A stretch of 64,000 nucleotides of DNA, from contig JBLDXI010000040.1 in the NCBI GenBank assembly GCA_047495785.1, positions 248,001-312,000 of the forward strand, written 5' to 3'. Of this stretch, positions 16,393 to 44,691 are shown piece by piece. The stretch's first letter is position 1. Each line of letters opens with the position of its first letter. The position numbers and the translations under genes were made by a program. The notes beneath the pieces were generated by a model, which was given only the letters and a program-made list of their open reading frames with translations, had not been told where the DNA came from and ran no database searches. The DNA is from Lepidodermella squamata. Its lineage: Eukaryota > Animalia > Gastrotricha.

Positions 16393-19243
16393 ATGCCTCC
16401 TAAAGGCAAACGGAAAGGTCAAGGCTTTACAAATAGGAAAGACCGACGCGCTACTGATAGAGAAGCTCGTCCTTATTATACGGCCAGGGTTTTAAAACGC
16501 CTTGCCCGCGAGGATGAGTCTGCCTCTGTCAACGGGCTGACACCTACACCAACACCTACGCCTCTTCCCGTCTCTCGCCCTGATTTACTTGAGCTGTGTG
16601 ACGCGGCTCTGAGTGACCGAGAAAACTTGTCGCTATCACTAATATCATCGACAGCTGAAACTCCAGGTTGCGGTTTCTTCGCGAGGCCGAAACGAAGCCG
16701 GTTAAAAAATTCAGGAAAATTTTGAAATATTGCGTTCTGATATTTTTAGATAAATTATCTCACTTAATCTCACTTCATAAATTTTAAATGATATTTCTGG
16801 GTTTCCAAAATTATTTTTCTAAATTTTTCAAAACTTGAAAATTGTTATAGCAATTTTGGTGAATTTTCCAAGTTCTATTTCGAATAATTTCTATTATGTT
16901 AACAGTTCCGCTCGGTGAAACCCTCAATTCCATCCCTCGATTTTGCTCGACCCCATTTCCCACGCCACCTCCAACATCGTTCGTCGATACTTTGGCTATT
17001 GTTGCCGATTTTGTTTCGCAAATGTCTTCTTTTGCCTATCCAGGTTAGTTTTTTCCCTTAAAAAATCAGCGCTACTTTTCTTGAATTTTCTTTAAATTTT
17101 TTAATTATTTAAATTTTTTATTATTTAAATTTTTTTTTAGTATCTCGCGTTGCGGAGCTTGAGGCAAAACTGACGCAATCCACCGTCGAAATTCAAGATT
17201 TAGAATTGAGGCTGGCTTCATCAACTGCCGAAATTGGTGCACTGAAGCAAGTCGTCTCAAATCTCGAGCCAGAAAATGCGGATTTTCGAGAAAAGTGCAA
17301 TGCCCTTGACAAAAACTTCGCAGAATTTCGTGTTCGCTACGAGTTGGAACGGCGTCGAACGATCAACAAAGTTAAAAATCTTCAAAAACGTGTGTCTAAG
17401 TACCGTTGCAAGGTGGCCAAAGCTGGCGAAGCACCGAAACCGGCCGTGATTCAACCACCTGAAAAGCCGAAACCTGTCCTTCACCCCAAGCTGACGATGA
17501 GTGGCAGCAATTTTTCGAAGAGCAACAACAGCTGCGCGGTAAAGATCCTAAGCACTACGGTTTAGTGACGAATTTGTTGCCTACGCGATGGCGCTTCAAT
17601 TACGAAGTCCCTCGGCTTACTACTATCTGTACGCTTCGAAAATGTTAATATTGCCGTCAGAGCGTTATCTACAGCGTCTTATACCCGTTGAGTATTGGGG
17701 CGGGCAGTCCGATGTTGCTTACAAGCTGCTTAAGGAAGAAGCTGAGATGAACGGCGACTTCAATAGCAAGAAAGGCCTCGTCATTTTGTCGTGCGATGAA
17801 GTCAGCGTTTCAAAGGCCTTGAAATCCACCCCAACCCGGGATGACCGAACTGTCGGAATGGCATTAGACGATCCGAATCAACGGGCTGAAAATATGCTCA
17901 GCTTTATGGCGACTTATCTTCAAACTGGCTTGCAAGTCAACATCGCCAATTACCCAGTCGCCAAAAAATGCGGCGCTGCATTTATGCACCAAGCTCGCGA
18001 AGATCGTCTTTACGACATCGGCTCGCGCGTCATTTGCACGGTCATGGATGGCGGTGGAACCAACTGGTCGTGGATCAACAGCGTGGGTGGCAAGTCGTTC
18101 AAGCATCCTTGCAACCCCGAGTGGGACATCTACATTTTAATCGATGTTCCCCATCTATTGAAATGTGCTCGAAATGACGTTCTCCACAAGCGGTTTATTA
18201 TGACAAACGGCGGCTGTGTCAGCTGGGATCTCATTCGAGCGCTATTCGATTGGGATAAAAAGCAGCAGTGGCGAATGATTCCTCGAGTCACTCGCCACCA
18301 CGTTCACACCATCTTTCTCAACGCTGCTTCGCCTCAAAAAATGCGAGTCGCCTACGCTGCACAAGTTTGCTCAAGATCGATGGCTCTAGCTATCATGGCC
18401 ATGTTCGGCCAAAGCGAGCGTAAATTCGACGCTGAAGCCACAGCCGAATTTTTCCATCTCTTTAATGACTGGTTCGATTGTTTGAACGGTTCTACCTACG
18501 AACGGGCGAAGGAGAACAGAAATCCAGCCCTTGAGCCCTACACATCTTGTGACGACCCTCGTCTCGCTTGGCTGGAGACTGAGTTTGTTAATCGACTAAC
18601 AGCATTGCAAATTGCAAGCCAGAAATCGCGAAAACAAACGTTTGATAACTCTGAAGGACGGCAGCCAGCGAAATTATAGCACGGCATTCAACGAGGCAAC
18701 CTTCAAGGGTTTCATTGTAACGTCGACAAATTTTCCAAAAGCAGCTCGATTATGTCTTCAATTGAACGTTCAGTTTGTGATGGCTAATCGATTTAACCAG
18801 GACGGTCTCGAACAGCTCTTTAGCCAATTTCGTCAATGCGGAGGCGGCAAAACTAACCCTTCAGTTTTTGACATTTTGGTCCGGTATTCGGCCCGGTATT
18901 CGGCATTCCTGGTGGCTCAAATGTGGGAGTGAAAAAACACATCGGCGGCATTCGGTTTAACACCACCATGCGTAAGCTGAAGAAGGAAGCGGTTGCAAAA
19001 ATCAAAGCTGCTAATTTGCTCAAAGTTGGCCTTCCAGCCGACCTTGGTCGTAATCCGCTGTCCTTGTCGTACATGGCCGGTTTCATCACACGCCGCCTTG
19101 GACTAAGCACAGACTCAGCTAACATCGAGTGGGACGAGTGGGTCGCCCAGTGCAGCCGCGGCGGTCTCGTTCATCCGCATTTCCACGTCAAGAGTATTTT
19201 GACCGCAATTTGCCACCTCAACGAAGGCGTTCTCCAGCCGTAG
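16393..19243 (+). pseudogene. P-element/THAP9-like DDE transposase, spliced N-terminus, frameshifted
   Basis: Motifs SPSAYYYL, ILSCDEV, TVMDGGGTN, IDVPHLLKCARN, QKMRVAYAAQV, NDWFDCLNG, NQDGLEQLFSQFR, YMAG and SRGGL. Exons 16393-16666, 16906-17043 and from 17141 splice in frame. Frameshifts near 17500, 18620 and 18920. Confidence 0.9.
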
Positions 19244-19890
19244 AAGACGCTGGCCGTAGGCAACCTCCTTTTCCTCGAACTTCTTCAGGCGGGCGTCCAT
19301 CATTTCGAACAAACGAGCGCCGTCGAGCGTCTGGAACTGGTTACGGATAGCAGGGTTAACAGGCGGGAGTTGCGGTGGGGGCGGCGACGCGGAGCCGAGA
19401 AGATCGCGAGTGGCAACCCGGAAGACGCGGCCCGGAGGGGGCTGAGGCGGCGCGGTCGGTGGCATGATCTTCTTCTGTCGAGCGACACGAGCACGTCTCG
19501 CCTCGGCGCGGGCAGCACGGGACTCGGCCTCCTGCACTTTAGCGGCCTTGAACTGAGGACAGCCGCGCCAGAGACTGGAGTGGCGAGGCGAGCCGCCGTC
19601 CGGACAGTTGACGCAGGCGAGGGATTCGCGCGGCGCTTCGCACTGGGCGGTTTTGTGGTTCGGCGAGGCGCAGCGCCCACACAGGAGGTCTTTCTCTGTC
19701 GCAGCAGTCAACTTCGACGTGCCCAAACCGGGCGCAGCGCATACACTTAGGCGGAAGGCCGTCCTTGAGAGGGCGGCACTTGATACGGCGATTCAGGAGC
19801 TCGAGGCCGAGGGTGAGAGCCTCGTCGCGCAACGCCTGTCTTGAGGACGACGACGCGGAGCGGGTCATCGCCGGGGGAGTGAACTGGCAT
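19240..19890 (-). mobile_element. Frameshifted LINE ORF1 (gag) fragment abutting the transposase 3' end
   Basis: Knuckles CMRCARFGHVEVDC, CGRCASPNHKTAQC and CVNCPDGGSPRHSSLWRGCP, split over two frames. Confidence 0.8.
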
Positions 19891-22768: not shown

Positions 22769-23593
22769 TTAATCCGAGTTGGAGCTTGAGCTGGAGTCTT
22801 GAGACTTGGAGTCCTCATCGCTTGAGACGGAGCCGTTGCGCTGACCGCCACAGGGCTGCATGTCGTCCCGTGCGATATCGGCTTCTGCTGACCAAGGCGT
22901 CTGGTACTCCGGCTCCACCTCCAGGTCGCGGAAATTCTCCGCTTGATTTTTACGGTGCTCCAACAATCTGCTTAGCTGCGGCCAGAGTTCTGCAGTTAGT
23001 GTCACACGATTGTCACCTGATTGAATCCCGATAACAGCCGAATCGGCATAGACTGGAGAGCCAGGGGAGCCGAAAAGCGTCTGCGTCTTGTAAAAACAAT
23101 GAGGATTATCAACCCTGTCAATCAAGACGGAAGAAACATGAAAGGCCGAGCTCATCGAATGTTCCGCGTCAGTATAGCAGCCGATCACATCGACGGCTTG
23201 GTTTTCCTTAGGAACGGCGTCCTCGCTAATCGGGTCAAACAATGGGCAAGCCGTCAAGCCCAGGTTTCTCACTTGTTTCCACGCCTTCTTTCCCAATTCG
23301 ACGACGGTGACACCGAGATTTTGGAAGTCGTGAAAGAATCGGCCATCTATGCCGATTTCCTTTTCAACTTTCGCCGGCTTCTTAAGGCCACGGTAAAATG
23401 TGACGACAAATATATTGCCCTCTTCAAGGAGTATCGGCGCATTACCGCGACCAATATCGTCATTGCTCGCAATGAGGTATTTCTTGTAGTCAATCTCTAC
23501 AAGGTAACAAGCGGCCATAGATCGATTTGCTGGAGAAATGGTCCCGATCGCATGCTTAGCGTACGGCGAACTGTGCAGTCTCTGAGCTTGCAT
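22769..23593 (-). CDS. Trypsin-like (Trypsin_2/FAM111-like) pseudo-protease, paralog A; catalytic triad lost
   Basis: Intronless 274 aa, colinear with paralogs C and D. NYHV becomes SNDD, DLDV becomes NLGV, and GSSG becomes GSPG. Confidence 0.8.
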   Translation of the reverse strand: MQAQRLHSSPYAKHAIGTISPANRSMAACYLVEIDYKKYLIASNDDIGRGNAPILLEEGNIFVVTFYRGLKKPAKVEKEIGIDGRFFHDFQNLGVTVVELGKKAWKQVRNLGLTACPLFDPISEDAVPKENQAVDVIGCYTDAEHSMSSAFHVSSVLIDRVDNPHCFYKTQTLFGSPGSPVYADSAVIGIQSGDNRVTLTAELWPQLSRLLEHRKNQAENFRDLEVEPEYQTPWSAEADIARDDMQPCGGQRNGSVSSDEDSKSQDSSSSSNSD

Positions 23594-24477
23594 AGTTGGA
23601 ATTTTGGGCTCAATTAATGAAATTCTAGAATGGAAAGTGACACAATTGCCTAATTAGTTACCGCATGATATTCGCTGACTACTCAACTCGAATAATTGGC
23701 ATTGACCTAGGTAGTAACCTAGGATTTAAGAAGCCAATCCGTAGGAAAATAACCAAATTTGTACGGCGAGTAAATAACCATAACCCTGATAAAACCTAGT
23801 GAGAGGTCGCAAATCGAGTTGTCAACCAGAAAAATCATGATGCTGGTGATAAGAAATTATTAGCCGTAGGATTCGATGGAAATGCTTTACCATAATTATG
23901 GCTTGATTATAGTGGTAAATGGTGCTTTAATAATATTATTATAATTGTAATATTTACCGCGGGGTCGTAATATTAGAAGGTACTATAAATATTAGCGGTG
24001 TGATAAAAGGAAGAACAAGGACCACCACTAGACCACTAGATATTGTTTAGCAAACAACTAGCAACGCCAAAAGTCAAACAACCCAACTACGAGTTATCTT
24101 TTTTTATAACACAGTATATTTCGTAGTACGAGGCCCAGCTCCCGTCTCCTGTTGTCGTGGGGCGTGTTCCGTTCCGTCGCGAGTGAATAATAACGTGAAT
24201 ACCTCCGCACGTTTTTATGCTCGTCGAGGGCAAGGATTCTTGTTGACAACTCACCCGTATCCGATAAAACTGCTGTCTAATCTCGGCGCAGTTTTATTTT
24301 GCAGCTCATATCAACGGCGACGTCAGCCGCGGCAATGTTTATTTTATTTGGTGTGGCCAACCACTCGTTCACACCGAAAACCCACGATTGGTTTATTAGC
24401 AAAAAAAGGTTTGCACCCAGCCTAGGTACGAATGAGCTGATCGAGCAGCGACAACGTACTCACAGACCGCCGCACTT

Positions 24478-26156
24478 CATGAGACGTATAATAGGACGCC
24501 GCGGCTTGCAGAAAATCATAAAAAGCGTGCTATTTCTAATAGTCCAAAGTCCAATCAATGAATCATCTAATTACATTTTTGCAATCATCCAGTGTTTTTT
24601 TTAAGGAAAAGTTCGGTGTTTACCCAAAACAGTTCGGTGTTTACACCTATGAGCCTTATATGTACCGGAATTTTTGGGTATAAAACTGCGGGTAATTTAT
24701 ACCGAAAGTAGCTTTGCCTCAGTGACTTTGATTTGATTTGATTTGATTTCTTCAGTAAATCGCGGGTCTTGTTAAATCAATCATTTCAAATCAAATCGAC
24801 GAAAAATCCATGGTAAATCAATCAAATCAAATCATCCAAACAGTCTAAATCAAATCAAATCAAATCATCCGCATAGAAAACCTATATTATTACGGTAAAT
24901 TTCGGAGAATTGTTTCACATTTTAAGGTTGACTTTGGCAGGGTAACTTTAAAAGGGGTATAACGGCTCCAGTCTTAGCAATCCTTAAAACGGAAAGAGGT
25001 GTTTCAACGCAAATGCGGAAACGGAAAGTTCTCATGATAGGTAAAAGAGGGAATTCCAAGAGTTTTGAATACTCTAATTCAGCGTAAATCATGGGGGCTA
25101 AATCATTTGCAAATCAAATCATCGTAAAAACTTTGTAAATCAATCATCAGTAAATCAAATCAAATCACAATCAAATCAAATCAAATCAAAGTCTCTGCTT
25201 TGCCTTCTGTCTACAACTATTAGAAGCAGCGGCTGAAATCATGGGACAACTAAATTTTCGAATTTGCGAGCGAAGCGAGCTTAAATTTCGATTTCATGCT
25301 GGAATTGGTGCTGAGAATAGCCTAAAATTGCTTCAAAATAACGATGATATTTCTAAATAAGTTAATGAAAGCATCGCAGTTCATACTTCAGGCGAGATGA
25401 TACTTCGTAGGAATGATTGCTCAATTTCTTCACCATCAAATTCGAAGTAGCGGTGTAGTACCAACAACTGCGTAAGGTGAAGACCGCAGTCGAAGACGCG
25501 AGAAACGAATACACATATGTAGGAGTCAAAAGTGCGAGCGAAGCGAGGAGAAAAATTTACCGTAAACTACAGTATAAAGGCCGCACTCGAATAATCCCCG
25601 CAAAAACACCCCATTTTAAAATATTTGGCAATAATAAAGGCCGCGCGCGAATAATCGCCGCACTCCTTAATAGCGATTAGCAGTCACCCTCAATGAGACA
25701 CCTGGGGTGACTCCCGAGTAGACGGATTATCCGCACTTCTTAGCGAATATGTAAACTCATTGCGCTAGCTGCAGATCTTGATTACAGTAAAATCCGCCCT
25801 CTGGCGCACCTGTTACACCCGTTAGTAGTGAATAAACTGCTAGTTCAGCGTGACGGCTGAAAATTCAAGATAATAAAGGCCGCACTCGAATAATCGCCGC
25901 ACCTGTATAATCGCCGAATTTTTCATCCCTTTCTGAAAAATCAGGAAAATTAATTGTAACGTTAAAAATGCATGAGATGAAAGAGTTAGCAAGTTTCCAG
26001 ACCAAGGTGCTTTACAGGCGCGAGCAGGTTTCGGATTTCGGTGTTTACATCGCCAGTTTCCGGTGTTTCCGGTGTTTACGGCCGGGTAGCAACCGAGCGG
26101 TCATGTAATAGGAGCTTCGAAGCCGCGGCGTCCTTTACATAGTACGTCTCATGATG
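24478..26156 (-). mobile_element. Second non-autonomous P-like element, inverted relative to 4264-7833
   Basis: Ends CATGAGACGTA... at 24478 and ...TACGTCTCATG(ATG) at 26153-26156. 8-bp duplication CCGCACTT at 24470-24477 and 26157-26164. Confidence 0.8.
24720..25197. mobile_element. hAT-like MITE rich in AAATC/GATTT pentamers, nested in the P-like element
   Basis: TIR CAG(T/A)GACTTTGATTTGATTTGATTTGATT. 8-bp TSD CTTTGCCT at 24712-24719 and 25198-25205. Confidence 0.88.
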
Positions 26157-26407
26157 CCGCACTTTACTTTCTTTCATACCTGATCATTGTATTCAGGGTG
26201 ATGATGGATTACATGTACGGACTGGATATCGATGTGTCGGTGCGGGTTTTTGAAGATCGGTGGCACTGTAGAATTCCAGGGGTTGCCCTGTTCTATGGCA
26301 CGAAGGCTTAGATTTGGGACTTTTCTACCGACTCGGCCCGGACCTACACCACTTCTTTTTATTGTTCAGTTTTAAGTATAGGATAAGCCATTGAGGTCAT
26401 ACATAGG

Positions 26408-26645
26408 TCATACATCGATGTCGTGTGAGCCAAAGAACAATCGGCCATGCTTGCATATTTTCACTGTCACTTTGTTAGGCCCCAGACGGTGCTGGTGAAT
26501 TGAGATGTTAAATTTGCTGCCCTTTCCAAGCAGTATGGGCGCTTTATCGCCGCCGATTACGTGGTAGTTGTTCAGGAGGCAAGTCTTGGGTTCGATCACA
26601 CCAATTAAACCAGTCGCAGTAAATTTACTGCCTGGAATTTGACAT
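26408..26645 (-). pseudogene. Truncated trypsin-like protease, paralog B
   Basis: CQIPGSKFTATGLIGVIEPKTCLLNNYHVIGG...GRLFFGSHDIDV* is highly similar to the N-terminal half of paralog D; the rest is missing. Confidence 0.85.
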
Positions 26646-27349
26646 AATCGGAGATGCGCGTAAAACGTCCTTCGAACGACTTCAAAGGCTTCAAGACCGA
26701 GTGGTCCGCATAGTTATGAGTGTGCCTTTTTCCGCAGCCGCAGATCCTCTTCGCGGAAGCAACTAGGCTGGCTAGACCTTGTTCGAACTTCCAAGTTGAC
26801 CTTCAAAGTTCCCTAATTCCGCATCGACTACAGCAAAGCCAGTCTCAGCGGGCCAGTGTTTTTCAACACCCTGCCAGTCCACTTCCATTGCTCACAAAAT
26901 CGGCCAGTCGATATCAGCACCTACAACGGCAGCTTTCCGACCTGCTAATGTGGAATCAAGGCCTGCGCCACCGCCAATGACTGCAGACAGCTTGTATTAT
27001 AGACATTTACTTTGTTGTTGATTATTTTATACTAATTCATCTCACTTTGTTTTGACCAATAACGAAACGGAACAGACTCTGCACACTTTTTTGATACTGA
27101 CACCTAATTTTTCAAGTCTAGCTCTCAACAATGGGATCCAATGTCATTGAATAGATAAATAAATAAATAAATTACAACCGTTTTCCGTTCATTCATTGAA
27201 AGGTTTACGGCTAATTTAAATCGCGTGCTGTGCTGGAAATGCATGCTTTTCTTGTTATTAAATCGCAAAATATTTCGTTATTTTTACCATTCAATCAATA
27301 AAATTCTGCTAGTTCATTTTCTTTTGGAGGTTTCACACCTTGATCAGTG

Positions 27350-30073
27350 ATGGCAGTGCGCCTTATTACGCTTGTGTTGGCTTGCTCATATCTCCACCCT
27401 GTCTCCTCACTCTCAGAGAGAGCTGAAAACGTCACCTTTGCCATTTTTAACGGTGACGTCGTCTCAACCGTAATAACAACGACCATGTACCCTTACTCTT
27501 ATGACGGCTTCGTCCCGGGCCAACCGCCGGCGAAACCGTGGCCGTTGCCGATACCTTACGCATTAAATAACAACACCTGGAAACGCGGCAGTTGCAGCGT
27601 CCCATCAGATTGCCGCGATGCATCTTTGTGTGAGTTGACGAGTGACTCATGAAATGTCCTTTGTTTATGATGTTAATATTCACGTGGCAGCCGAGGTCGA
27701 TACTGCCGTTATCAGGCAAGCAATAGCTCAACTCGAATCAGTCACCTGTTTGCGGTTCGAGGAGCGACCTTCCATCAACGTGAATACGTCAAACTCGATT
27801 ATTTTCTTACAATATGGGTGAGTTGCTGTGTTGCAGCTTGGAAATTCATCATGAGTCTCTTTTTCAATCAGGAACTCCCAAGGTTATCATAGCGTTGATT
27901 ATCCTGCAAAGCTCGTTGCTATCGGGAATTCTTACGGCATCCAAGATTCAAGCTTCGCGGTTAGTTTCCTACTTAACACTAGAAACAAAAATCAGCTATG
28001 GCTTCGAATCAGGTTCAATTTGCGATTAGAAAAATTGGCTACGTCCTAGGGCTGACGTATGAGCTCAGAAGGCCAGATCGTGATCAATATCTCACAGCCT
28101 ACCCTGGCTCCGAGAACAGGTTTGATTCATGACTTATTTCGGCTACTTAGATTTCTGCATTCTTCCGAATAGCTACCCTGTAAATACGGCGCAAACGTAC
28201 TACAACTCGACTCCGTTTGACTACGAGTCGCTCTTCAATCCTATTATGAATATGGTGGGCGATCTGAAGGTGGGCGAGAGGTACCCACCCGACCGGCGAT
28301 ACGTGACAAGCTTGGGACAGTCTAGCCACCTGTCACTGCTCGACATGGTGAAGTTGAACACGCTCTACAACTGCTTCAGTGAGTTTAAGCGGCTGCGAAG
28401 AAACGCTGTTAATCAAACGTCTTTTTTTAGATTCTGATCCTTGCAAGAACCCAACGATCACATGCCAAAATAGTGGCTACCCTAATCCGAGCGTGAACTG
28501 TACAAAATGCTTCTGCCCTGTTGGTCTTGCTGGCGATTTTTGCGAAATCCCATACCCGACCGATACAGCGAACGGCTGTGGCGGCGAAATCTACGTTGAG
28601 CCTTGTACTACGGTTGACATATCAACACCCACAGTTGGCACAACGAATTCGACTCGTTGCTCGTGGCGTGTAACAACGGTTTGTAAATGATTTCCCTTAT
28701 CGATTTCCTGCACGTTTCCTTTCCTTTTTCAGGGTGTTACGAGTGGATTGATCTTCGCGTTTCCAACTTGGCTCTTTCTGGAATATCATGGTGGGCGAAT
28801 CTATGCTAATCTGAGAATATCTGTCTAATAACTTTATTCTTAGGATCTGTAAATTGCATGAACTTCGTCCTCATAAGAGGCTTGGGGCTGGAGAGCAGAG
28901 TTCCCGGATTTATGTGAGTGACGAAATTAGCCTTGAAATGGCTACAAATTTTTCCTCCGTTTAGATTTTGCAGTGTCGCTAATATGAACGGGCGTGTTTT
29001 TGTAACCAACAACAATCAAGCTTTGTTCTACTCAGGCATAGTGTACCCGGAAGCGGGCGAACGCGGCCGTGTGACTGTCTTCGCAACTTGTCCCGGCGTT
29101 AAAGCGACCGAGTTGAGTAAGGAATGCCGAATCACGCCAGTGGCAAGTGACTATGAAGGATCGCTCATTTCCAAGACTGCAACTGGTGCAACCTGCTCGC
29201 GCTGGTCCGAAGATTCCGGGCTGCGCTACATGTATATACCGAGAGGCGATTTTAATGCCTCTGGAAATGCATGTCGCAATCTCTATTTTTCTTCTTTAAA
29301 ATGCTGGAGTAACGGTGGAATTACCGACTGCGAGAATTACGACAAAATTAAAAGCTGCAGTGAGTCATTTTACTTTGAATGCAATTTAGCTCTATATCGA
29401 ATCCCCCTTTCTTAATTTAATGGCTTAATAGCTCAATTGGCTTCGCGTTGCATCAACTCGGAAACTGGCCAGTTCGAAGCGTGCAGGCGGTACTGCTTGG
29501 TTGGGGAAACTGCTTTTAAGGAATGGACAACTCGTTTCATGGACACCTGCAGTAAGGGCGTGAGTTAAAATAATCTAATCCAATCTAGCCAAATTAGCGC
29601 TGTTTGTGTTGTAGAACGCCAAGAAATGCGTCAAAGGCTCGACTTTTCGTTGTATCGCTGGCGACCAAGGCTGTGCCACCGGTGAGAGTAAAATCGTGAG
29701 CTATAGAAAAATTGGGAAATTTCGGCAAGAATTCTGCAATCTACTTCTTTAGATGTTCAACACCTACGCCTTCTTCGGCCGTAATTTACTAGCGTGTAAT
29801 CATCGAGCTGATCTCAATTGGGTTTGTTTCGGTCGGAATAATGCTGATAATATCGTTGATAAATCATTGCGTATAGAAATACATCCGCTGTTACCGCAAC
29901 ACGCCAGGCAAGCCGTTCGCAGACTGCCGACGTTCAGATTTCGGATGCAAACCGACTGAGGTTGGTCATAATTCTCCGCTTTTTAAGCCTGAAAAAACTC
30001 CTCTGCTCCTTAACAGGTTTCGGATGCAACGCCGACGTTTACGGATCCTTTCAAATGCTACGAGGGCATGTAG
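27350..30073 (+). CDS. Secreted astacin-like (M12A) pseudo-metalloprotease with EGF, CUB, kringle-like and Cys-rich domains; multi-exon
   Basis: Signal peptide MAVRLITLVLACSYL; astacin landmarks WPLPIPY, TCLRFEER, RPDRDQY, FDYESL and LSLLDMVKLNTLYNC. EGF CQNSGYPNP..CFCPVGLAGDFCE; CUB CGGEI..CSWRV; kringle-like YEG..SKTATGATCSRW..NACRN. Last exon 30017-30073. Confidence 0.85.
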
Positions 30074-30623
30074 CTGTCACTCAAAACTCTCTAGTTTGAA
30101 TTTGGAACATCATAACTCATTCTTTTGATCTGTTTCTGCTTTATGGAATATTAATATACTAGTTTTTTCTTCACGGCAAATCTGTTGCCGGTAATGTTGA
30201 TCAGCCAAGTGGACGGTCTATTTTTCCTTAAAATAAAATGCGTAACAGCCATACTTTTTCTATATTGCCACGGAGTGCGATAAATTAATTTCTTGATTCC
30301 ACCTGCTTCTATCAGCTCAACACATTTTTTATCGCAAAACAACCGATTAACCGAGAAGGGGCACAGGAATCGGCCGAAAGCGGGGCGTTAAGATCGCGAA
30401 TTAGAGGCTCGGCGAAACTTGCCGTACTCGATTTACTCTCCATTCGTCTCCGAGACTCTTTCCTATTCGTAAATCTCGGCCGGCTCCGTTCAGTCATAGA
30501 CTTTTTACTTGTGCTATAGCCTCAGAATAAAAAATATCAATTCAGATAACAAATCATATAATATCAGAGTAGACTTCTGCAAGTTTTTCAACATTGGCAT
30601 GCCGGGCGAACTCTTTCACTTGA

Positions 30624-31730
30624 TTAGTTTTGTTTATAAAAAATCACACCCGCTAACCCCACCAACCCCGCCACCGCAACCGACCCAGCAAAATATAGAC
30701 TGACTTTGAGGCCGGTCCTGCTTTCGCCACTCTTGCGCGTCAGCGGAGGGGTATTTGCGAACCACTGGTTTATTCGAAATTCGAAGTCTGACTCTGAGTC
30801 GGACGATTTTTGAAGATTTTGCTCCTGCTGCTCGTTAGTATTCGTAAGATTGTACTGCGGTGAGAAATCAACATCTCCGAATCTCCCGTTACCATCCTGA
30901 AACTCCGAGTTCGGTATCTCGCTCAAGATTGGTTCCATTATTCCGACAACAATCTGACCAACATAGACTAGACTGCCTGTGGAGATATCATCTTTACGCC
31001 CGGCCGTCCTTATATCTTTTTTCACACGTTCCAAGATTGCTTCAATTAGCGTTGCTCGATTGACGCCAGTATTGTCCCCGACATAGCCGGAATGAATGGC
31101 AACAACATCAGAAACTTGACCATCAGAGAGTTGACTGCCTGAGGAACCGACATCCGTTTGCCCCGTGTAAAAAACGAACGGATGCTGGACTTCAACAATT
31201 GTGCCTGTAATAACAAAGCTGCTTCCAAAGCCGAACATTTTTAGTAGATAATACAAGAAGCTCGCACGCGAAGGTTCCACGCGAGGATAGCCGATCACAT
31301 CGACAACTGCGTTCACATTAGGAATGGCGGCCCGGCTTCCTGGGCGAGCCAATGGGCAATCGGTAATGCCCAGCTTATTCAGTCGTTTCTCCCAATTCTC
31401 CCCCAATTCGATGACAGTAGCATCGATGTCGGGATAGCCGAAGTAGAATCGGCCATGCCTGCCGATTTTCACTGTTGTCTTGTTAGGTCCCAGAAGTTGT
31501 GGGTGAAAGGCGATGGCGAATTTATTGCCCCTCTCAAGCGGCATGGCCTTTTCGCCGCCGCCGATTACGTGGTAGTTCGCCATGAGCCATGCCTTGTCGT
31601 AAGTCACAACAATGAAACCAGTCGCAGTAGATCCATCGGGTAAAATGATTTGTCCGCTCGCATGCATAGAGTACGGCGAATCACGTTGTAATATTTCAGG
31701 CTCTGATCCAGCGGTGCATCGCGGTTGCAT
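30624..31730 (-). CDS. Trypsin-like serine protease, paralog C, with a C-terminal tail anchor
   Basis: Intronless 368 aa with no signal peptide. Triad ANYHVIG, DIDATVIEL, TDVGSSG. C-terminus SLYFAGSVAVAGLVGLAGVIFYKQN. Confidence 0.88.
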   Translation of the reverse strand: MQPRCTAGSEPEILQRDSPYSMHASGQIILPDGSTATGFIVVTYDKAWLMANYHVIGGGEKAMPLERGNKFAIAFHPQLLGPNKTTVKIGRHGRFYFGYPDIDATVIELGENWEKRLNKLGITDCPLARPGSRAAIPNVNAVVDVIGYPRVEPSRASFLYYLLKMFGFGSSFVITGTIVEVQHPFVFYTGQTDVGSSGSQLSDGQVSDVVAIHSGYVGDNTGVNRATLIEAILERVKKDIRTAGRKDDISTGSLVYVGQIVVGIMEPILSEIPNSEFQDGNGRFGDVDFSPQYNLTNTNEQQEQNLQKSSDSESDFEFRINQWFANTPPLTRKSGESRTGLKVSLYFAGSVAVAGLVGLAGVIFYKQN

Positions 31731-32991
31731 TTCCTCCTGAATCGTTTAGTTTATGTTTGCTGGTTTTGAACAAAACTGTAGAATCTAAACGAGGAGACTG
31801 GCATTAGTTTAAATGCAGAGGAGACTGCATTTCACAAAGCACTCAATCTTTCTACATTTACTGAAAAAAAGAATACTCGAGTGGGGAGAGGTGGGGGGAG
31901 TAGGGAGGCTGAACTCAAAAAGCACTACATAATCGAGCTATTTATTTGATTTTATTTGCATGCAAAAAAATTGTTCAAAGCTAAAGCAGAAGAATGCGGG
32001 CAAAACATTGGTTTTCTGCTCTAGAAAATCAGGAAAAATGGCAATTTCAGGGCATGAGGGTTACAAAATTCCGTAATTTTTCCTTGATTTTACAAGTACG
32101 GTGCATGATTTGTTTAATTTTGGACACTTGTGGGGTAATTTTGGAGACCTCATTAGCATATTCATAATCAGATGCGTGCAGAACTTTAAGGGTTACTTGA
32201 AAGTCCGAAAAAAAATTCGGAATGGCCCCACGGCGTCAACTAGTGCTGGTAAATTTTTTCGAAAAATCGGCTTTCAGGTTGACAGGGAATGAGGGGGTCC
32301 CAAATGGACGTTTTGAGGCATCGAAGCTTTTTATTTATAATAAAAACAGGTACATTTCAGACCACCTTTAATTTAGTACCGTTGGAAAGCCCGTCTTTCT
32401 AGGCAACTTGCAATTTTAATGGGAATTTTTTCAACCTCACTGATAGAACACACTTACGTGTGGAAGTTGTTCTGTCCATTTTCTTAATACGAGGCAGATT
32501 ACCATCGAATTCGAAAATATGAGCAGCGTTAGTAGTCATCTAATACTGAGTGAATACTAATGTAGTCATAGTAAAAAATGATAATGATAAGAAGTTGAAG
32601 GTGTAAAATTAAGTTGAATAAACTATACATATTAATCCTGTAATATTTTTTATGTTTAATCATTGGAAACCTATAATAATAGACGGATTCATGGCAATGA
32701 ATTATGCTGCAGTCTGTGACGATGAAAAACTTACATAGCCTTAATGCTCACGTTTCTTCAACTACTTGTGATTGTGGAAAGCGTCTTGCCGGAATGCTTA
32801 GCTTACATTTTGTTTGAATAAAAAAATATAAAAAGTAGTTCGGATTAAGTGCAGCGTCGTTGGCGGTAAATATGAGAAAAAAATTAAACAAGCCTTCTGC
32901 GGCGCTGACAACAATTTGGCAGCATAAGGATGTACAATTGTAATGGAAGACTTTAACAGGCGTTGATTAGCAAAGTTTGGGCACCTACGCT

Positions 32992-33474
32992 CATACGGGC
33001 GCCGTCGTTCACAAATTCGAAAAACTGAGAAATTTTCAACATAATGGTTGCCCCCTTAAAAATTACGATTTCGCAATAAAAAACACAACCCAGTAGGTAA
33101 TCGATGACGCTCTGCACACTGGTTACCGATTTTTCTCTCAATTAGCTAATCGTAACCGGCAATTAGCGAAAAATGAAAATATTTGAATCGAAGTGTTTAT
33201 CAACTCATTTCTAGGGTTAAAAAAATCGCTGATTCCGAAAATCATATTTTCAACTAAAAATTCGGCAATTTAATTTTTTTCATGTCATTTAGGCCCAATT
33301 TTCGACGAGTTAGACATGTAATAAAAATCTGGAAAATTCACCAAAATGTGCGGCTCAAAAAGTTGCTACAAAGACCTGTTTTCATCGTTCTAGAATGATT
33401 TTTAAGGATGGTGACCATTGTCTCAAATGACAAAAATTTTGTGAAAAACATTTGTGAACGACGGCGCACGTATG
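32992..33474. mobile_element. About 480-bp MITE
   Basis: 25-bp TIR CATACG(G/T)GCGCCGTCGTTCACAAAT at 32992-33016 and 33450-33474. TSD is either the flanking CT or the internal TA. Confidence 0.75.
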
Positions 33475-34353
33475 CTTGAGAGGTTTACAGATTTATCTGC
33501 GCTGCGGAAGCAATACAAATTGGCCTTTAACTTCCATGAGGCGACCCAATTTGCGACTGGGCTATTATAGGAAAACGAATGCGGTATTCCATTTAAAAAA
33601 ATTTGTGTTGTGTATAACTCTATACTACTTTATTGAGAAAATGAAACGAACATGATAAACGGAGTTCCCAAGGCTTAAAATTTACAATTCGAATCTAAGT
33701 CGAACAAGTGAATACTTACGAATCAGTTATCATATGAGAATCACAATATTGTTCTTAGTCATTGCGCCGATGCTATCGGGCACATTCTCACACTTTGCCA
33801 TCCGCAAACACCTCCCTGAGCCGCTTGGTAGCCACGGAAATCGCGAAGCGCGTTCTTCGGTCTGGGAAAACACCAAAGAACCGGGCTGAATTGTGATCTC
33901 GGGTCAAGAGGTAAAGATAACAAGCTTAAGTCGAAAGATGTCGAGCCATTTGACAAAGGCAATTTTCGTTGAAAACCGAAACGAAAAATGAAGTTCGAGA
34001 ATCGCGAAGCATAATATTTCGCAGGAGATCACAAACATGCAGATCCGAGACACGGCAATGCTCGAATTCACGGGATCGTTGCCATTCAAAAATGTTGCGA
34101 AATCCAGCGAGTTGTCGACGTTGAGTCGACCAGAGACTTCCCCTATCAACGCTTGACCGCCGTAAACGAAGAGATGCGTAGCCATAAACAGTGACTGAGC
34201 CGTCAGCCGTCACCAAGGCGAAACCATACCGGCATAGCTTTGGCGCCGCGAATCATGCAGCCAAGCTGCACAACTTCTGAGAAGGAATCCCGAGGAGGAA
34301 TCCAAGTAGCCGAGAATAGAGAAACAGGCCAATTTCAGGCCCAAAAGGTTTTT

Positions 34354-35319
34354 TTACATTATTCGACAGTCGAAGCCCGAGTTTGAGTTGGACGCTTCGG
34401 ACTTGGTTTTCTCCCACACTGAGATTGAGCTTGACCCCGAGTCGGGTGAATCGAGTTCCGCGTCCTCAATTGACATATTATCCTGCGAGATATCAGCGTC
34501 CGCATACATCCCGGGAACAGTCGAGAATTCCGAGTAAGGTATGTCACTCAAATCCAATCCAACCCTTCCAATCGCCCGCAAGCGATCCTCGCGGATTTTC
34601 TTAAGCAGCGCGGCCCTTTTTTCTTGATTCTCCCTCATTGGCCTTCTCACACCCTCCCAGATTGCTTCGAACAGCGTCGCGAAGTTGTAACCAACATTGG
34701 CATTGTAGCCGCAATGGACCCCGACAACGACCGAGCCAACGTAGACTGGGCCGCCTGATGAGCCCGCATGCGTTTGCGCCGTGTACAAAACAGTTGGATA
34801 ATCAACTTCGCCAATTGTTCCGCTAGAAATACGACTGACCAACCTCGCATGCGAAGGCTTTATGTAAGGATAGCCGACCACGTCGACGGCTGCGCTAACA
34901 ATAGGAATGGCGGCCCGGCTTCCAGGGCGAGCCAAAGGGCAATGGGTGATGCCCAGCCTTTGCAGTAATTTCCACTTTTTCTCGCCCAATTCGATGACAG
35001 TGACATCGAGATCGCGTAAACCGAAGAAGAATCGGCCATGCTTCCCGATTTTCACTGTCACTTTGTTAGGTCCCAGAAGGTGTTGGTGAAATGAGATGGT
35101 AAATTTACTGCCCTTTCCAAGCGCTATGGGCGCTCCATCGCCGCCAATTACGTGGTAATTGGTCAGAAGGTAAGTCTTGGGTTCAATCACAACAATGAAA
35201 CCAGTCGCGGTAAATTTACTGCCTGGAATTTGACAAATCGCATGATCAGACCACGGTGAACCACGTTCTAATGGTTCGGCTTCTGAGCCAGCGTTGCATC
35301 GTGGTTGCTCACTTGCCAT
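34354..35319 (-). CDS. Trypsin-like serine protease, paralog D, with a C-terminal CaaX-like box
   Basis: ATG at 35319 (MASEQPRC). Triad LTNYHVIG, DLDVTVIEL, THAGSSGGPV, followed by VVGVHCG. Ends CRIM-stop. Confidence 0.88.
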   Translation of the reverse strand: MASEQPRCNAGSEAEPLERGSPWSDHAICQIPGSKFTATGFIVVIEPKTYLLTNYHVIGGDGAPIALGKGSKFTISFHQHLLGPNKVTVKIGKHGRFFFGLRDLDVTVIELGEKKWKLLQRLGITHCPLARPGSRAAIPIVSAAVDVVGYPYIKPSHARLVSRISSGTIGEVDYPTVLYTAQTHAGSSGGPVYVGSVVVGVHCGYNANVGYNFATLFEAIWEGVRRPMRENQEKRAALLKKIREDRLRAIGRVGLDLSDIPYSEFSTVPGMYADADISQDNMSIEDAELDSPDSGSSSISVWEKTKSEASNSNSGFDCRIM

Positions 35320-36018
35320 TTCAGGTTCAATGAAAAGTTTAAAAATAAAATTCACAACGATAAGCAAGTCTTCGTTAGGTGTAGAAGTGGATAATTTTTC
35401 CTATTTTATCAACGTGTAAGCCGTGGTGACTCATCGCTCGTCGACACGAAGTTCTGCCGCAAGTGAAAGATCGTGGTCTAGTGCCCAAGGCAACGCGGTC
35501 GAATGAGGCGTGTTATATTCAGCTCAATCTGTGTGAGCCACACAAAAGATCTCCGGGACATCCATTGATGATCAGACACTCATGATTCTATAAAGGTCAC
35601 TATAGCTGGCGACGTAATAAGCGAGAAACCGAAAATAATATGGAAGCAGTAAGGATTTTTCGACAACCCCTGTTTCACATACTTCTTCATTCATTTTTTG
35701 CGGCTTTTTTTGCTATGATTCATCTTTAATAAAACTTTATATACACGACGCATTTTACGACGTTATACAGTGATTTAAACGTTCGCGTGTATACAAACTT
35801 CATGAGTATTTCTAAAAAACTAGCTGAAACTTACACCCATTGCTACATTATAGCGTGGTAAAGCTATACATACCCAATGTAACACTCGGTGCGTGAATCA
35901 TTCAAGCTGTTAGAAGATCGATCATGCAAAAATGGGGTTCGAAAATCATATATTTATTACTGATCCAAAGTTCCCATCCTTACTACTTATTGATTTCATG
36001 TTATTCAATGGGGCTGCT

Positions 36019-37284
36019 TCACAAAACTGCCAGCTCAGATTGTAACCAGGTATGTGGGCATGAATCGATAAAGTTTATGCGACGTAGGTGCGAATTCAAA
36101 GCAGCCGGTCTTTCACTGAAATCAGACCAGTCGAACTGAAATTGAGCTGGATCAATCGTGGTATTCCGTTGAGGAAATTCTGAATCACAATATTCAGGCC
36201 TATATTGTGATTCAGCCATCGAGTAGCAAATTCCTCTTCTCAGGACCAATGTCAAATTATCGCCTAATTTTTCGTGTTGGTACGTCCAATGGACCGTGAC
36301 ATGAGGCTCAACGGCCAAATGCTTTGCCGGATCAATACCAGCCTCTTTGAATCCAGAAACTTGGCCTAGAATAACGCCCGACCAGCCAGGTTGCTCCTCG
36401 GCAATAATCCAATAATATTCATTCCGCAGCTCGTTCCACATGATTGCACACATAATGCTAAACTCGCTGTAATCATCGAGTTCAATGAGCCGTTGAAATA
36501 ATTCGTCAAAGCTCGAAAAGTTTCGAAATCTCTGGCCGACTTTGATCATTCTTTCCCGAAATAATTTCAGATGAGCTGTTTTCAGCACCACAGGGAAATA
36601 GGACATGCAGTTGAAGGGCTCTGAAAATGAAGTGAAAATATTGTGAAATTTCTGGAAATTTAACCAACCTTTATAGCCGCTAAATTGATATGTTTTAAGA
36701 GGAGAGGTTCGCCAGTATAACGAGTCATCCTTTGGTTTCCCGAAAACCGGTCTAACAATCGGTTTCCCATCGCGAAATAAGTCGTAAAGTGTGACTCTCG
36801 ATATGAAAACTGCATCCGTATCGGCCATCGCGATAAATTCCGATTTTGTGAAGTTATCGATCCAAAACTTCATCCACTGCGATTTATGCCAACCATAAGA
36901 ATCACGAGGACCAGTTATCGGCCCGACTAAGTCAAGGTTGAACTCAATCGATTGCCCCAAAGCTTGCAGAGTGGTTTTCTCGAACTCATCAGCGTAATAG
37001 CTTGCATTTTCTCGTTCAGAATCGGACAAAATTCGTAATTTAAGGGCGTTCCTAGGCCAAAATATGGCCAAGGACCGAAGGAAGTAATCGCGGTATTCAA
37101 CGAAACTTTCCTCAGCCGAACCAGCAGGTACAATAATTTCAATGTCAGGCCATGGGTGAAGGATATTCAAGCAATTATCTCGGTTCTCGCTTGGAAGAAA
37201 TGATTGATAAAATAAATACAGTAGAATGGAACATAGCCAAAGGATTAATGCAAAAAATCTTTGCTTTTTGCATATTTTCAGCAT
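36019..37284 (-). CDS. Type II membrane GT-A-fold glycosyltransferase-like protein
   Basis: N-terminal TM (FFALILWLCSILLYLFY) and DXD motif (KFWIDNFTKSEFIAMADTDAVF). Probable 48-nt in-frame GT-AG intron at 36668-36621. Confidence 0.7.
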   Translation of the reverse strand: MLKICKKQRFFALILWLCSILLYLFYQSFLPSENRDNCLNILHPWPDIEIIVPAGSAEESFVEYRDYFLRSLAIFWPRNALKLRILSDSERENASYYADEFEKTTLQALGQSIEFNLDLVGPITGPRDSYGWHKSQWMKFWIDNFTKSEFIAMADTDAVFISRVTLYDLFRDGKPIVRPVFGKPKDDSLYWRTSPLKTYQFSGYKGWLNFQKFHNIFTSFSEPFNCMSYFPVVLKTAHLKLFRERMIKVGQRFRNFSSFDELFQRLIELDDYSEFSIMCAIMWNELRNEYYWIIAEEQPGWSGVILGQVSGFKEAGIDPAKHLAVEPHVTVHWTYQHEKLGDNLTLVLRRGICYSMAESQYRPEYCDSEFPQRNTTIDPAQFQFDWSDFSERPAALNSHLRRINFIDSCPHTWLQSELAVL

Positions 37285-37489: not shown

Positions 37490-39761
37490 TCAAAAGAACG
37501 GATTTTTGTACGGCTTCAAAGCTGGGTAAATGCCGAACATGCAAACTGGTGTTAACACAACTAAAATGCCGTAAATAACCGCAATAAGTCTCTCGATGAC
37601 CAACGCAGTGAATTGCCACCTCAATTGCCGTAGATCCAGAGGCTTCGGAGTGTCCAGAAAGTCTGTATGTTCCGTTTGACTCCGGCCTAGGAAGTTGCTT
37701 TGGCTCTTCCTCGCCTTTTTGTTTCTCGTCCCCATTCGACTTTGGCGTTTAGGTTTATGAGGCTCGACTTTGACCCCATCCAAATGCTCATCAGCGTATT
37801 TATCGAACAGCGAATTGTATTTAATTTCTGTGGAATAATCTGCGGTGTAATCCTGGCTTAGTGGCTTATGATGATGGTGGTTATGATGCTCGTCATCGCT
37901 ATCGTCATCGCTGTCATCCGGCTCGTGATCTGGCGGGCGGTGTTCAATGAGAAGCAACTTAGCAACGAATTCGATGGTTCGCATCATCCAGGGTGGGATT
38001 TGACGCTTGTGGTGCTCATTTATGCCTCGTTCGTCAATGTTTTCCATGGCGAAGAATGCCATTCCTTCACCAAGCTAGAAAAAAATGAATATTTATTAAC
38101 ATTTATTAAGAAAAAACGTAGTTCCTATTTGTGCATGTGGGTATATATTTCAACTATTTTTATAAATCTTTACAAATTGAAGTATTTTCGAAGCATTTTT
38201 GGCTAGAGTTAGGGTTAGGGTTAGGGTTAGGTTTAGGTTTAGGGTTCGGGTTAAGGTTAGAGTTAGGGTTATGGTCAAGGTCAAGGTTAGGGTTAGGGCT
38301 AGTTCCTGGGGTTAGTAGGATTGGGTTTAGGGTTAGGAAACGAAAATGTTCTTGTAATTTCGAGCTTTGAACAAACCATTGAGAACGCAATGTATCCCAT
38401 CTGTAGATCGATGTATATGGACAGAAGGGGAATGTGATCGCTAGATTTCGGCATATCTCCGATAACCATGACTTGAAACACCGAATAAGCCAGCAAACAA
38501 GTAAAGGAAATCTGAACTTTTTCAATATCGCCGAGTGGCAACGTGAACGCGGCCATGTGTGCCAAGGCAATCAGCAAGCTCGGTATAATGACATTCATCC
38601 TTGGACATTTCAAAAATTAAATAATTTGGTAAGCAGTATATTTCCTGATTTACTTACATGTAATACATTACTTTACGTCTAATAGTAATGTAGAATTCAA
38701 CGTGATCGAACGAATTCCATGGTTCCAGGTAGGAATAGTCCTGTTTGGCTTGTGACGTGGCCACCAAATCCCATTGTTCGTTAACAGTAAAATACTTCAA
38801 CGTTACATTGTTTGCAAATTGGAACGTCATGTATTCCCTCGTATATCGCCAACTAGATAAATCGGATTAAGATGCAGTATAGTAAAATAAATTTACGTCT
38901 CACCTTTCCAACTTCAGGGCGCAAGTTTGCGTGTCAAAGGGGAACCTATAAATTGCCGAGAAACACGTTAACTCAGCACTAAATTGAAAATTCAGTTTAC
39001 ATGGTTAGATCGTAGTCGCAGTAGATAGCGAAAGTTCCGCCCGGGCTGAAATAGGCCTGTCCGTTAGAATAAACACGAACTTTCTCACCCTCCATCCGCA
39101 TTAATTGATATCGCCCCTCGGAATTCATCTATTAAAAACAGAAAAAAGCAGAAAAAATATATTCCGATTGATAGAAAATCCGAACTCACCTGAGCAACAT
39201 CTGGTACCCAAATTTCTTCCGCTGGTAAAACTGCACGTATAAAATTGAGGCTGAAGCGTCGAATTGACGAGCAAATGATGACTCACCAACGTAATCAACG
39301 CAGTTGTAAGGATAGTCATTGACCCACACTCGAAACTCATCCATCCATCTCTTCAAAATTCACGAGAAAATTTTGAATAGCATACAGAGAAGTCTGGATC
39401 TTACCACGCCAATGTAACCAGAAATCTTCATAACTCTATCTCGCTCGACCTGTTTACTCCATGAAAATCAGCGCTCTGAATGAGTATGGTGACTTACGAC
39501 ATCGTTGACCTGCGATAGGACGAAAGTGAGTTTCACGATAACAGTTTCGCTGGAATTTAATTTCGGACGTTCCCATCTATTGTAGGGTTGGAAATACTTC
39601 ATATTGACATCGTGGTCGGACGCTTTGCCATCGACATTGCCTCGGCAAGCTGGTGGCCGTGGTTTTGGCGCCGGTAGAGGCACATTCACCTCAGCAGCGC
39701 CATTGGAGATTCCATTGGAGAAAAATAGCAAAAGCGAAAATCCGACATGGTTGCTGATCAT
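37490..39761 (-). CDS. nAChR-like Cys-loop channel subunit (non-alpha type), copy 1, 9 exons
   Basis: Signal peptide; YNRWERP, WMDE and IWVPD; Cys-loop CDYDLTMFPFDTQTC; RRKVMYY; M1-M2 FTLPLGDIEKVQISFTCLLAYSVF; M4 WQFTALVIERL. No vicinal Cys in loop C. Confidence 0.92.
38209..38337 (+). repeat. Degenerate (TTAGGG)n telomere-like tract inside the last intron of nAChR copy 1
   Basis: About 21 hexamer units, many of them perfect TTAGGG. Confidence 0.85.
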
Positions 39762-42379: not shown

Positions 42380-44691
42380 TTAGAAGAACGGATTTTTGTA
42401 TGGGTTTAAAGCTGGGTAAATGACGAACATGCAAGTTGGCGTTAAGACGACTAAAATGCCGTAAATAACCGCAATAAGTCTCTCGATGACCAACGCAGTG
42501 AATTGCCACCTCAATTGCCTTAGATCCAGTGGGTTCGGGGTGTCCAGGAAGTCCGTATGTTCCGCCTGACTCCGGCTTAGGAAATTGCTTTGATTCTTCC
42601 TCGCTTTCTTGTTTCTTGTCTCCATTCGACTTTGACGCTTAGGTTTATGAGGCTCGACTTTGACTCCATTCAAATATTCATCAGGGCATTTATCAAAAAT
42701 CGAATAGTATTTGATGCCGGTCGAATAATCTGCGATGTCTTGGCTTGGTGGCTCTCTATAGCTATGACGCTCGTCATCGCTCTCGTCATCACTATCATCC
42801 GTTTCGCGAGTTGGCGGGTGGTGTCCGATGAGAAGGAGCTTAGCAACGCATTCGATGATTCTCATCATCCAGGGTGGGATTTGGCGCTTGTGGTGCTCAT
42901 TTATGCCTCGTTCGTCAATGTTTTCCATAGCGAAGAAGGCCATTCCCTCACCAAGCTGATAAAAAATATTAGTAAATATCTCAAAATACAATTTGCGCAA
43001 CCATTGTCTGTTTTTCAAACTTTGTGAGGGAAATGATTTTGAAAAATTGTGATTGAGAGATACAATTCCATCCTTTATTCGCGATTTTACCCAAAAAATT
43101 CATATATTAACCAGAGAAATCCCGTAAAAACCCGATGGTAACTGGTTCAGCACGATGTCAGACAATTATAACTAACCATAGAGAACGCAATGTATCCCAT
43201 CTGTAGATCGATGTATATGGACAGGAGGGGAATGTGATCGCTGGATTTCGGCATATCTCCAATAACCATGACTTGAAACACCGAATAAGCCAGTAAACAA
43301 GTGAAGGAGATCTGAACTTTCTCAATATCACCGATTGGCAACGTGAACGCGGCCATGTGTGCTAAGGCAATCAGCATACTCGGAATGATAACATTCATCC
43401 TTAACCAATTTCGAACAGTCAGTTATATTATAGTAGGTATAAATAGCTCTTACATGTAATACATTACTTTACGTCTAATAGTAATGTAGAATTCAACGTG
43501 ATCGAATGAGTTCCATGGTTCCAGGTAGGAATAGTCGCGTATTGCTTGTGACGTGGCTACGAGATCCCATTGTTCGTTAACAGTAAAATACTTCAACGTG
43601 AAATTGTTTGCAAATTGAAACGTCATGTAATCTCTCGTGTATCGCCAGCTAAAAGAATCGGATTAAAATGTAGAAATGTTTCAAAGATTAATGTCCCACC
43701 TTTCCAACTTCAGGGCGCAAGTTTGCGTGTCAAATGGGAACCTATAAATTGCCGAAATACATAACTTTTGCTCTAAAACTTTAATTTTAATTTACATTGT
43801 TAGATCGTAGTCGCAAAAGATAGCAAACGTTCCGCCCGGGCTAAAATAGGCTTGTCCGTTGGAATAGACGCGGACCTTTTCGCCGTCCATCCGCATTAAT
43901 TGATATCGCCCCTCTGAATTCATCTGTACAAAGCAAAAATGAAGTGAAACGCAAAAAAATCGGACAATTTTAGAAACATTTTGGGAAAATGAGCATTCTA
44001 GCGTTCATCTGGTCTTATTATGATGATTTGATGATTAAATCTAGGGGAATAAATATATTCTATATGTGATTTTAGACATTCATTATCATTGATTTCGAAC
44101 TCACTTGAGCGACATCTGGTACCCAAATGTCTTCTGCTGGTAGAACTAAATATTGAAAATTACGGTTAATGCTTACAATTTAGGAGGAACCATGGAAGAA
44201 CCGAATGCTCACCAACGTAATCAACGCAATTGAAAGGATAGTCGTTTTCCCATACTCGAAACTCATCCATCCATCTCTTCAGAAATTCCAGCAAACATTT
44301 GAAAAAGCAAATCCTTGAATCAAAATCTTACCACCCCGATGTATCCAGAAATCTTCATACCTCTGTCTCGTTCAACCTGATGTTTAACCCAGCATGAGTT
44401 ACTAAAAGGAATATTACATTAACATTGTACGCTTACGACATCGTTGACCTGAGAAAGGACGAAAGTGAGCTTTACAACAACAGTTTCGCTCGAATTCAAC
44501 CTAGGCCGTTCCCATTTGTTGTAGGGTTGGAAATACTTCATATTGACATCGTGGTCGGACGCTTTGCCGTCAACATTGCCTCGGCAAGCTGCTGGCCGTG
44601 GTTTCGGCGCTGGTAGAGGCACATCCACCTCGGGTGCGCCGTTGATTCCGATAAAGAAAAACAGCAAAAATCCGAAAACAATGCTCGTCAT
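42380..44691 (-). CDS. nAChR-like Cys-loop channel subunit, copy 2, 9 exons
   Basis: Same exon structure and near-identical protein to copy 1; introns have diverged. Confidence 0.92.

Follow-up and report, generated by a model that had tools for sequence, protein, structure and literature searches.

A tandem array of four protease gene copies, which we designate A, B, C and D, occupies positions 22769–35319 on the minus strand of the window, the 64-kb stretch of DNA analysed here (Table 1). The copies lie about 3.5–4 kb apart, none of them contains an intron, and retroelement debris is found between them. The window as a whole is eukaryotic in style, with long single-exon genes, Cys-loop receptor genes, ankyrin genes and debris of non-LTR retroelements. 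At the upper end of the array, the open reading frame of gene D runs uninterrupted from an ATG at 35319 to its TAA.

Table 1 Positions of gene D, its parts and its paralogs in the window.
Feature	Position	Strand	Basis
Gene D, intronless CDS, 321 codons plus TAA stop	34354..35319	minus	ORF list, translation
S1B/Trypsin_2-type protease domain of D, residues about 10–216	34672..35292	minus	
Catalytic codons of D: His56, Asp105, Ser188	35152–35154, 35005–35007, 34756–34758	minus	codons checked
Long basic helix behind the protease domain of D, residues 217–252	34564..34671	minus	DSSP on AlphaFold model
Disordered Ser/Asp-rich C-terminal tail of D, residues 261–321	34357..34539	minus	pLDDT, composition
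Candidate CaaX box of D: TGT CGA ATA ATG, Cys318-Arg-Ile-Met321	34357..34368	minus	
Stop codon of gene D, TAA	34354..34356	minus	run of A after TAA without effect on the stop frame
Candidate cryptic 81-nt intron (AAT/GTAAAA ... TTCCTTCTCAG/A)	34277..34357	minus	script scan; rival reading
First canonical AATAAA past the D stop, about 720 nt downstream	33629..33634	minus	pattern search
Paralog C, 368 aa	30624..31730	minus	tblastn, 47% identity; alignments
C-terminal hydrophobic helix of paralog C (VSLYFAGSVAVAGLVGLAGVIFY, then KQN-stop)	30636..30704	minus	Kyte-Doolittle 19-residue mean up to 2.05
Fragment B, D-like pseudogene piece, residues 11–106 only, 71% identical	26411..26698	minus	tblastn, ORF list
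Paralog A, 274 aa; all three catalytic residues replaced	22769..23593	minus	alignments

The translation of gene D ends in ...SNSGFDCRIM followed directly by TAA, placing a cysteine exactly at position -4 of the translated end. A preliminary description of this DNA had reported the CRIM-stop end, and re-reading the codons and the TAA on the minus strand confirmed it. A contig of a DNA run (X2) that spans 34125–34699 agrees with this reading, showing one mismatch to the window and no gap; X2 is possibly the sample behind the window assembly, so that its agreement tests the accuracy of the assembly only. For the other end of the gene, we took the ATG at 35319 as the start, the ORF list also holding an upstream TTG at 35367; the ATG is favoured because the aligned starts of paralogs C and A are also ATGs, no more than a few codons away.

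Residues 39–193 of protein D match the Pfam family Trypsin_2 (PF13365) with 38.7 bits, above the cut-off of 27.6, and the same family scores 17.7 bits in paralog C, below that cut-off, and gives no match in paralog A. The catalytic triad of D is intact and in the order His-Asp-Ser, made up of His56 (TNYHV), Asp105 (DLDVT) and Ser188 (GSSGGP), whose alignment columns are nearly invariant. In the AlphaFold model of D (mean pLDDT 74), the double-barrel domain is confident, with pLDDT mostly between 80 and 95. A Foldseek search with this model returned the staphylococcal proteases V8, Esp and Spl together with sobemovirus proteases as its best matches, at E-values of 1e-10 to 1e-8, those to V8, Esp and Spl having a probability of 1.00 and a TM-score by target of about 0.7. 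Similarly, a profile built from D, its paralogs and a few distant database relatives matched, among solved structures, V8, Esp and Spl at E-values of 1e-18 to 1e-11 (1e-18 for V8), as well as mammalian FAM111A at 6e-11. The staphylococcal S1B enzymes V8, Esp and SplA-F, the best profile and structural matches of D, have the same His/Asp/Ser order and a GSSG-type serine motif at an identity of only 16–21%; unlike D, which has no signal peptide and continues into a helix and a disordered tail, these bacterial enzymes are secreted and made with a signal peptide and a propeptide. NCBIfam gave no match for D. A PADLOC search yielded only weak protease-domain matches (LmuA, 2e-4), which we do not count as a sign of a defence system.

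No signal peptide and no membrane helix were detected in D: its N-terminus is hydrophilic, and its highest 19-residue hydropathy value, 1.37, falls within a beta strand. The hydropathy scan also found no hydrophobic segment near the C-terminus, which sets D apart from proteins of the tail-anchored type. Lacking both a signal peptide and a transmembrane helix, D should be cytosolic or nuclear. Its fold and triad are those of a trypsin-fold serine protease of the S1 clan (S1B/Trypsin_2 type), with predicted proteolytic activity. An intracellular site had been called unusual for an S1 protease; it has a precedent in nuclear FAM111A, picked up by the family profile. Like D, FAM111A is an intracellular animal serine protease of the Trypsin_2 type; the relation is distant and does not imply a common subfamily. 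FAM111A bears PIP and UBL regions at its N-terminus and is not known to end in a CaaX box.

Behind the protease domain and the basic helix, the last 61 residues of D include 14 serines and have a net charge of -9, and residues 261–321 have pLDDT values below 50 in the AlphaFold model. The flexible Ser-rich linker described earlier ahead of CRIM is thus real, and because the tail is disordered in the model, the C-terminus should be accessible. Compared with the rules for protein farnesyltransferase (FTase), the box of D has an uncharged aliphatic Ile at a2 and, at X, a Met, which belongs to the FTase class (M, S, Q, A, C). In a yeast CXXX screen, charged residues were excluded at a2 only, and a1 tolerated many residue types (PMC10320760); in Ras-based data, Ile at a2 and Met at X are the two positive patterns (PMC10320760). 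Human FTase farnesylated CRII, CRIQ and CRPQ, all with Arg at a1, in a humanized-yeast Ydj1 reporter, CRPQ being farnesylated and not cleaved (PMC11152559). The humanized-yeast reporter also showed prenylation of CAIM, CIIM, CLIM, CSIM and CVIM, so that every C-x-I-M sequence and every sequence with Arg at a1 assayed in that study was prenylated (PMC11152559). The Arg at a1 of D is therefore compatible with FTase, both by the tolerance seen in the screen (PMC10320760) and by the precedent of CRII, CRIQ and CRPQ (PMC11152559). These data bear out the earlier statement that CxIM termini such as CVIM and CSIM are farnesyltransferase substrates, both having been prenylated in the reporter (PMC11152559). 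The same description had termed Arg at a1 non-canonical, which is apt as a name and does not hold as an obstacle, since a1 is tolerant and the three Arg-a1 sequences were farnesylated. From these rules and precedents, farnesylation of D at Cys318 appears biochemically likely, with a little better than an even chance.

The Arg-a1 boxes that resemble that of D come from the hepatitis delta virus large antigen (CRPQ), HCMV IRL9 (CRIQ) and influenza PB2 (CRII) (PMC11152559). CRIQ and CRII have C-R-I in common with CRIM; unlike D, the bearers of all three are viral. A limited full-text literature search found no farnesylated trypsin-fold serine protease, and nothing relevant emerged from literature searches on CRIM as a farnesylation sequence or on paralogs of which one is tail-anchored and the other prenylated.

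We calculated how often such an end would arise by chance from the amino-acid make-up of 13 long ORFs of the window. Per protein, the chance of a Cys at -4 is 0.019, that of C-x-I-M is 2.6e-5 and that of a broad FTase-like CaaX end is 2.5e-3. A proteome of 15–25 thousand proteins would accordingly hold fewer than one C-x-I-M end by chance, and about 40–60 broad CaaX-like ends.

The tail of D, S-N-S-N-S-G-F-D-C-R-I-M-stop, aligns with S-D-S-E-S-D-F-E-F-R-I-N in paralog C, which continues for 47 more residues, and paralog A stops at ...SNSD, ahead of the FxxRI motif. At the aligned position of Cys318 (TGT), paralog C has Phe318 (TTT, 30777–30779). Conservation of the Cys at -4, which had been put forward as a check, thus fails among the paralogs, the residue being confined to D. 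Searches for relatives outside the array returned at most distant matches. A word-indexed protein search found no orthologue of D; a full HMMER search of 1.84 billion representative proteins likewise found none, giving eight distant Trypsin_2 matches with a best E-value of 1.4e-8 and 25–34% identity; and scans of metagenomes and viruses found no relative of D. The best database match, P0001, is a protein of 5162 aa with 14 separate Trypsin_2-like stretches. The family, with no close relative among the 1.84 billion representatives, stands as a case of a fast-evolving, lineage-specific array of intracellular proteases.

The coding DNA of C and D can be aligned, with a dS of about 0.55, and the homology breaks off sharply at CGAATAA, two codons before the end of D. 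Behind the common tail motif, C carries a membrane helix and D an optimal farnesylation box. The helix of C is single and Gly/Ala-rich, lies three residues from the stop and is found in a protein without a signal peptide, giving C a tail-anchor-like topology. This makes it possible that tethering to the cytosolic face of membranes may be a family trait. Between the flanks of A, C and D, no similarity above that of shuffled sequences was seen. The 3' flank of D was considered as a decayed version of the tail-anchor exon of C and rejected, its Smith-Waterman score lying below the shuffle mean; a 'GLK...LY' resemblance seen by eye between the D flank and the helix-coding part of C failed the same comparison. 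LIR and FFAT motifs, considered in the conserved tail segment S-x-S-x-S-x-F-[DE]-x-R-I, were also dismissed, their spacing being wrong by eye. In paralog C, the codons CGA ATA AAC on the minus strand hold a canonical AATAAA (30769–30774), and the ORF of D ends at the aligned position.

One reading of this comparison is that the CaaX box is accidental, CRIM having arisen neutrally when D alone changed Phe to Cys and gained a new stop, so that D would be a soluble intracellular protease, with farnesylation incidental or absent and no selected role. The restriction of the Cys to D, the abrupt halt of D/C homology just ahead of the new end, the lack of a second membrane signal in D, the 40–60 broad CaaX-like ends expected by chance and the only moderate constraint on the family, with a dN/dS of about 0.5, all speak for it. 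Against it, chance would yield the specific C-x-I-M end less than once in a proteome, and two changes must have coincided, a Cys arising exactly at -4 and a stop falling directly after an optimal Ile-Met; moreover, the sister paralog C has another type of C-terminal membrane anchor. Whether selected or not, D would probably be modified, given that the C-x-I-M and Arg-a1 sequences assayed were all prenylated (PMC11152559). Weighing these points, we regard an accidental box as rather unlikely, and retain a farnesylation signal as the preferred reading.

That reading requires D to be expressed with the terminus given by its ORF. None of the runs on record as RNA contains the gene D stretch. A further run, X1, which we guessed to be RNA, consists of short contigs whose depth is a crude measure; it has depth over gene C and over 33766–35261, gene D itself being covered at 34327–35261, and almost nil in the spacers at 31709–33000 and 35449–35822, while coverage by X2 is even over everything. 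The pattern of X1 looks like transcription of C and D, though it is not proof of it. X1 depth crosses the D stop, dropping in this crude contig depth from about 18 to about 6 just below it, and declines below about 33579. The first canonical AATAAA past the stop lies close to that point and may mark the end of a long 3' UTR of D. Four joints between opposite strands are present in X1 contigs within 33032–34404, one of them (34285 to 34404) around the D stop, and a search for inverted repeats left them unexplained.

The true C-terminus would differ if the GT within ATG-TAA served as a splice donor and 34277–34357 were removed, in which case ...CRIM would be exchanged for ...CRIISCAAWLHDSRRQSYAGMVSPW and D would end in ...FDCRIISCAAWLHDSRRQSYAGMVSPW, with the Cys internal. 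The donor AAT/GTAAAA is followed, 81 nt downstream, by a good pyrimidine-rich CAG acceptor (TTCCTTCTCAG/A), the nearest canonical AATAAA is some 720 nt past the stop, and some X1 depth is present downstream of the stop, all in keeping with such an event. However, a GTAA arises automatically in every end of the form Met-TAA, and this donor is weak, having neither an AG on its exon side nor a G at +5. Weaker joints of X1 are on its list, but a 'skips 80' joint is not, and among the short contigs of this presumed RNA run no skip joint of any kind is listed at the D end; the fall in its crude depth from 18 to about 6 occurs just where an exon would be expected. The peptide that would be added is unlike the tail of paralog C and has no recognisable feature, and the paralogs are all intronless. 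Splicing to a different terminus is, in our assessment, distinctly improbable.

Gene D could also be silent or dying, as one copy within a lineage-specific tandem array, which would make its terminus biologically meaningless. The array does contain the pseudo-protease A, in which the catalytic His, Asp and Ser are replaced by Asp, Gly and Pro, as well as fragment B and the retroelement debris between the copies, and the absence of the D stretch from the runs on record as RNA points the same way. Set against this, the 321-codon ORF of D is intact with all three catalytic residues present, and X1 depth tracks C and D and not the spacers, as a transcriptome would. In addition, dN/dS is about 0.5 for D versus C (within the domain) and about 1 for A versus C, so that D and C both look functional by this measure when set beside the dead copy A. 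Decay of D seems very unlikely, and we read D as probably a live gene.

The features of D suggest the following course. D would be made in the cytosol as a protease domain and a helix followed by the 61-residue disordered, acidic, Ser-rich tail ending in CRIM. The host farnesyltransferase would then, on balance probably, add a C15 farnesyl group to Cys318 on the exposed tail; cleavage of -RIM by an Rce1-type enzyme and methylation of the carboxyl end are possible later steps. Through its farnesyl group, D would bind weakly and reversibly to endomembranes or to a partner that recognises prenyl groups, with the long flexible tail acting as a leash. We infer, for D, translation of exactly the CRIM terminus, lipid modification, a membrane location and a selected function.

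By the two-signal rule, a lone farnesyl group without a polybasic stretch or a nearby palmitoylatable Cys gives only weak, transient membrane binding. In D, a polybasic stretch is absent, the 20 residues nearest the CaaX box contain no further Cys, and the tail is acidic, so that stable membrane anchoring is not expected. The earlier proposal of a lipid-anchored S1 protease on the cytosolic membrane face is consequently upheld in part: D belongs to the S1 clan, its triad is intact, the missing secretion signal points to an intracellular enzyme, and its end fits the FTase rules very well, but 'anchored' is too strong for one putative farnesyl group on an acidic tail.

The closest parallels for the box itself are the C-x-I-M ends of the farnesylated proteins K-Ras4B (CVIM), lamin A (CSIM), lamin B1 (CAIM) and PEX19 (CLIM). 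Like D, these proteins have a Cys at -4, an Ile at a2 and a Met at X behind a flexible region. They also have a second signal or a partner, in the form of a polybasic stretch, a nuclear localisation signal or cargo binding; D differs from them in its Arg at a1, its acidic tail and its protease domain, and its farnesyl group is a prediction. Tail-anchored proteins offer the other comparison. Paralog C matches them in having its helix near the end, where it would, in the manner of a prenyl group, keep the protease at the cytosolic face of a membrane. A helix of this kind is missing from D, and the DNA downstream of D is without significant similarity to the helix-coding part of C.

The known prenylated proteins are chiefly GTPases, lamins, chaperones, kinases and phosphatases. 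In the case of the trypsin-fold protease D, the four residues of the CaaX box give good grounds for predicting prenylation, short of a demonstration. Should D be farnesylated and C tail-anchored, one protease scaffold would have acquired two different membrane tethers, which would suggest regulated proteolysis on the cytosolic side of organelles in an invertebrate. Taken further, the array could represent undescribed, lineage-restricted intracellular trypsin-fold proteases held at the cytosolic face of membranes by interchangeable C-terminal anchors on a common disordered leash, C using a tail-anchor helix and D a farnesyl group, with the dead, anchor-less A possibly serving in regulation or as a decoy; this would make D the first prenylated member of the S1 family. 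We offer this wider scheme as a speculation that, taken whole, is doubtful.

Several other features lie in the window. Two paralogous small ORFs on the minus strand, of 190 aa (37490–38062) and 212 aa (42380–43018), both have a conserved N-terminus, an acidic Asp/His-rich stretch and a C-terminal hydrophobic segment; Pfam gave no match for the first of them. Also on the minus strand, a 421-aa ORF at 36019–37284 carries a hydrophobic segment at its N-terminus, and its Pfam match to DUF6492 stays below threshold (19.4 bits, cut-off 22.9). An Rfam search found nothing in the window. Mobile-element debris, partly within GC-rich (55–56%) islands, is present at 3607–4062, 11828–12829, 14236–15117, 17588–18679 and 19115–19726, and comprises reverse-transcriptase-like ORFs, two Gag-like ORFs with CCHC knuckles and a transposase-like ORF. 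Finally, two single-exon ORFs on the minus strand, at 51701–52825 and 56144–57238, resemble by eye subunits of Cys-loop ligand-gated channels, with a signal peptide followed by TM helices.
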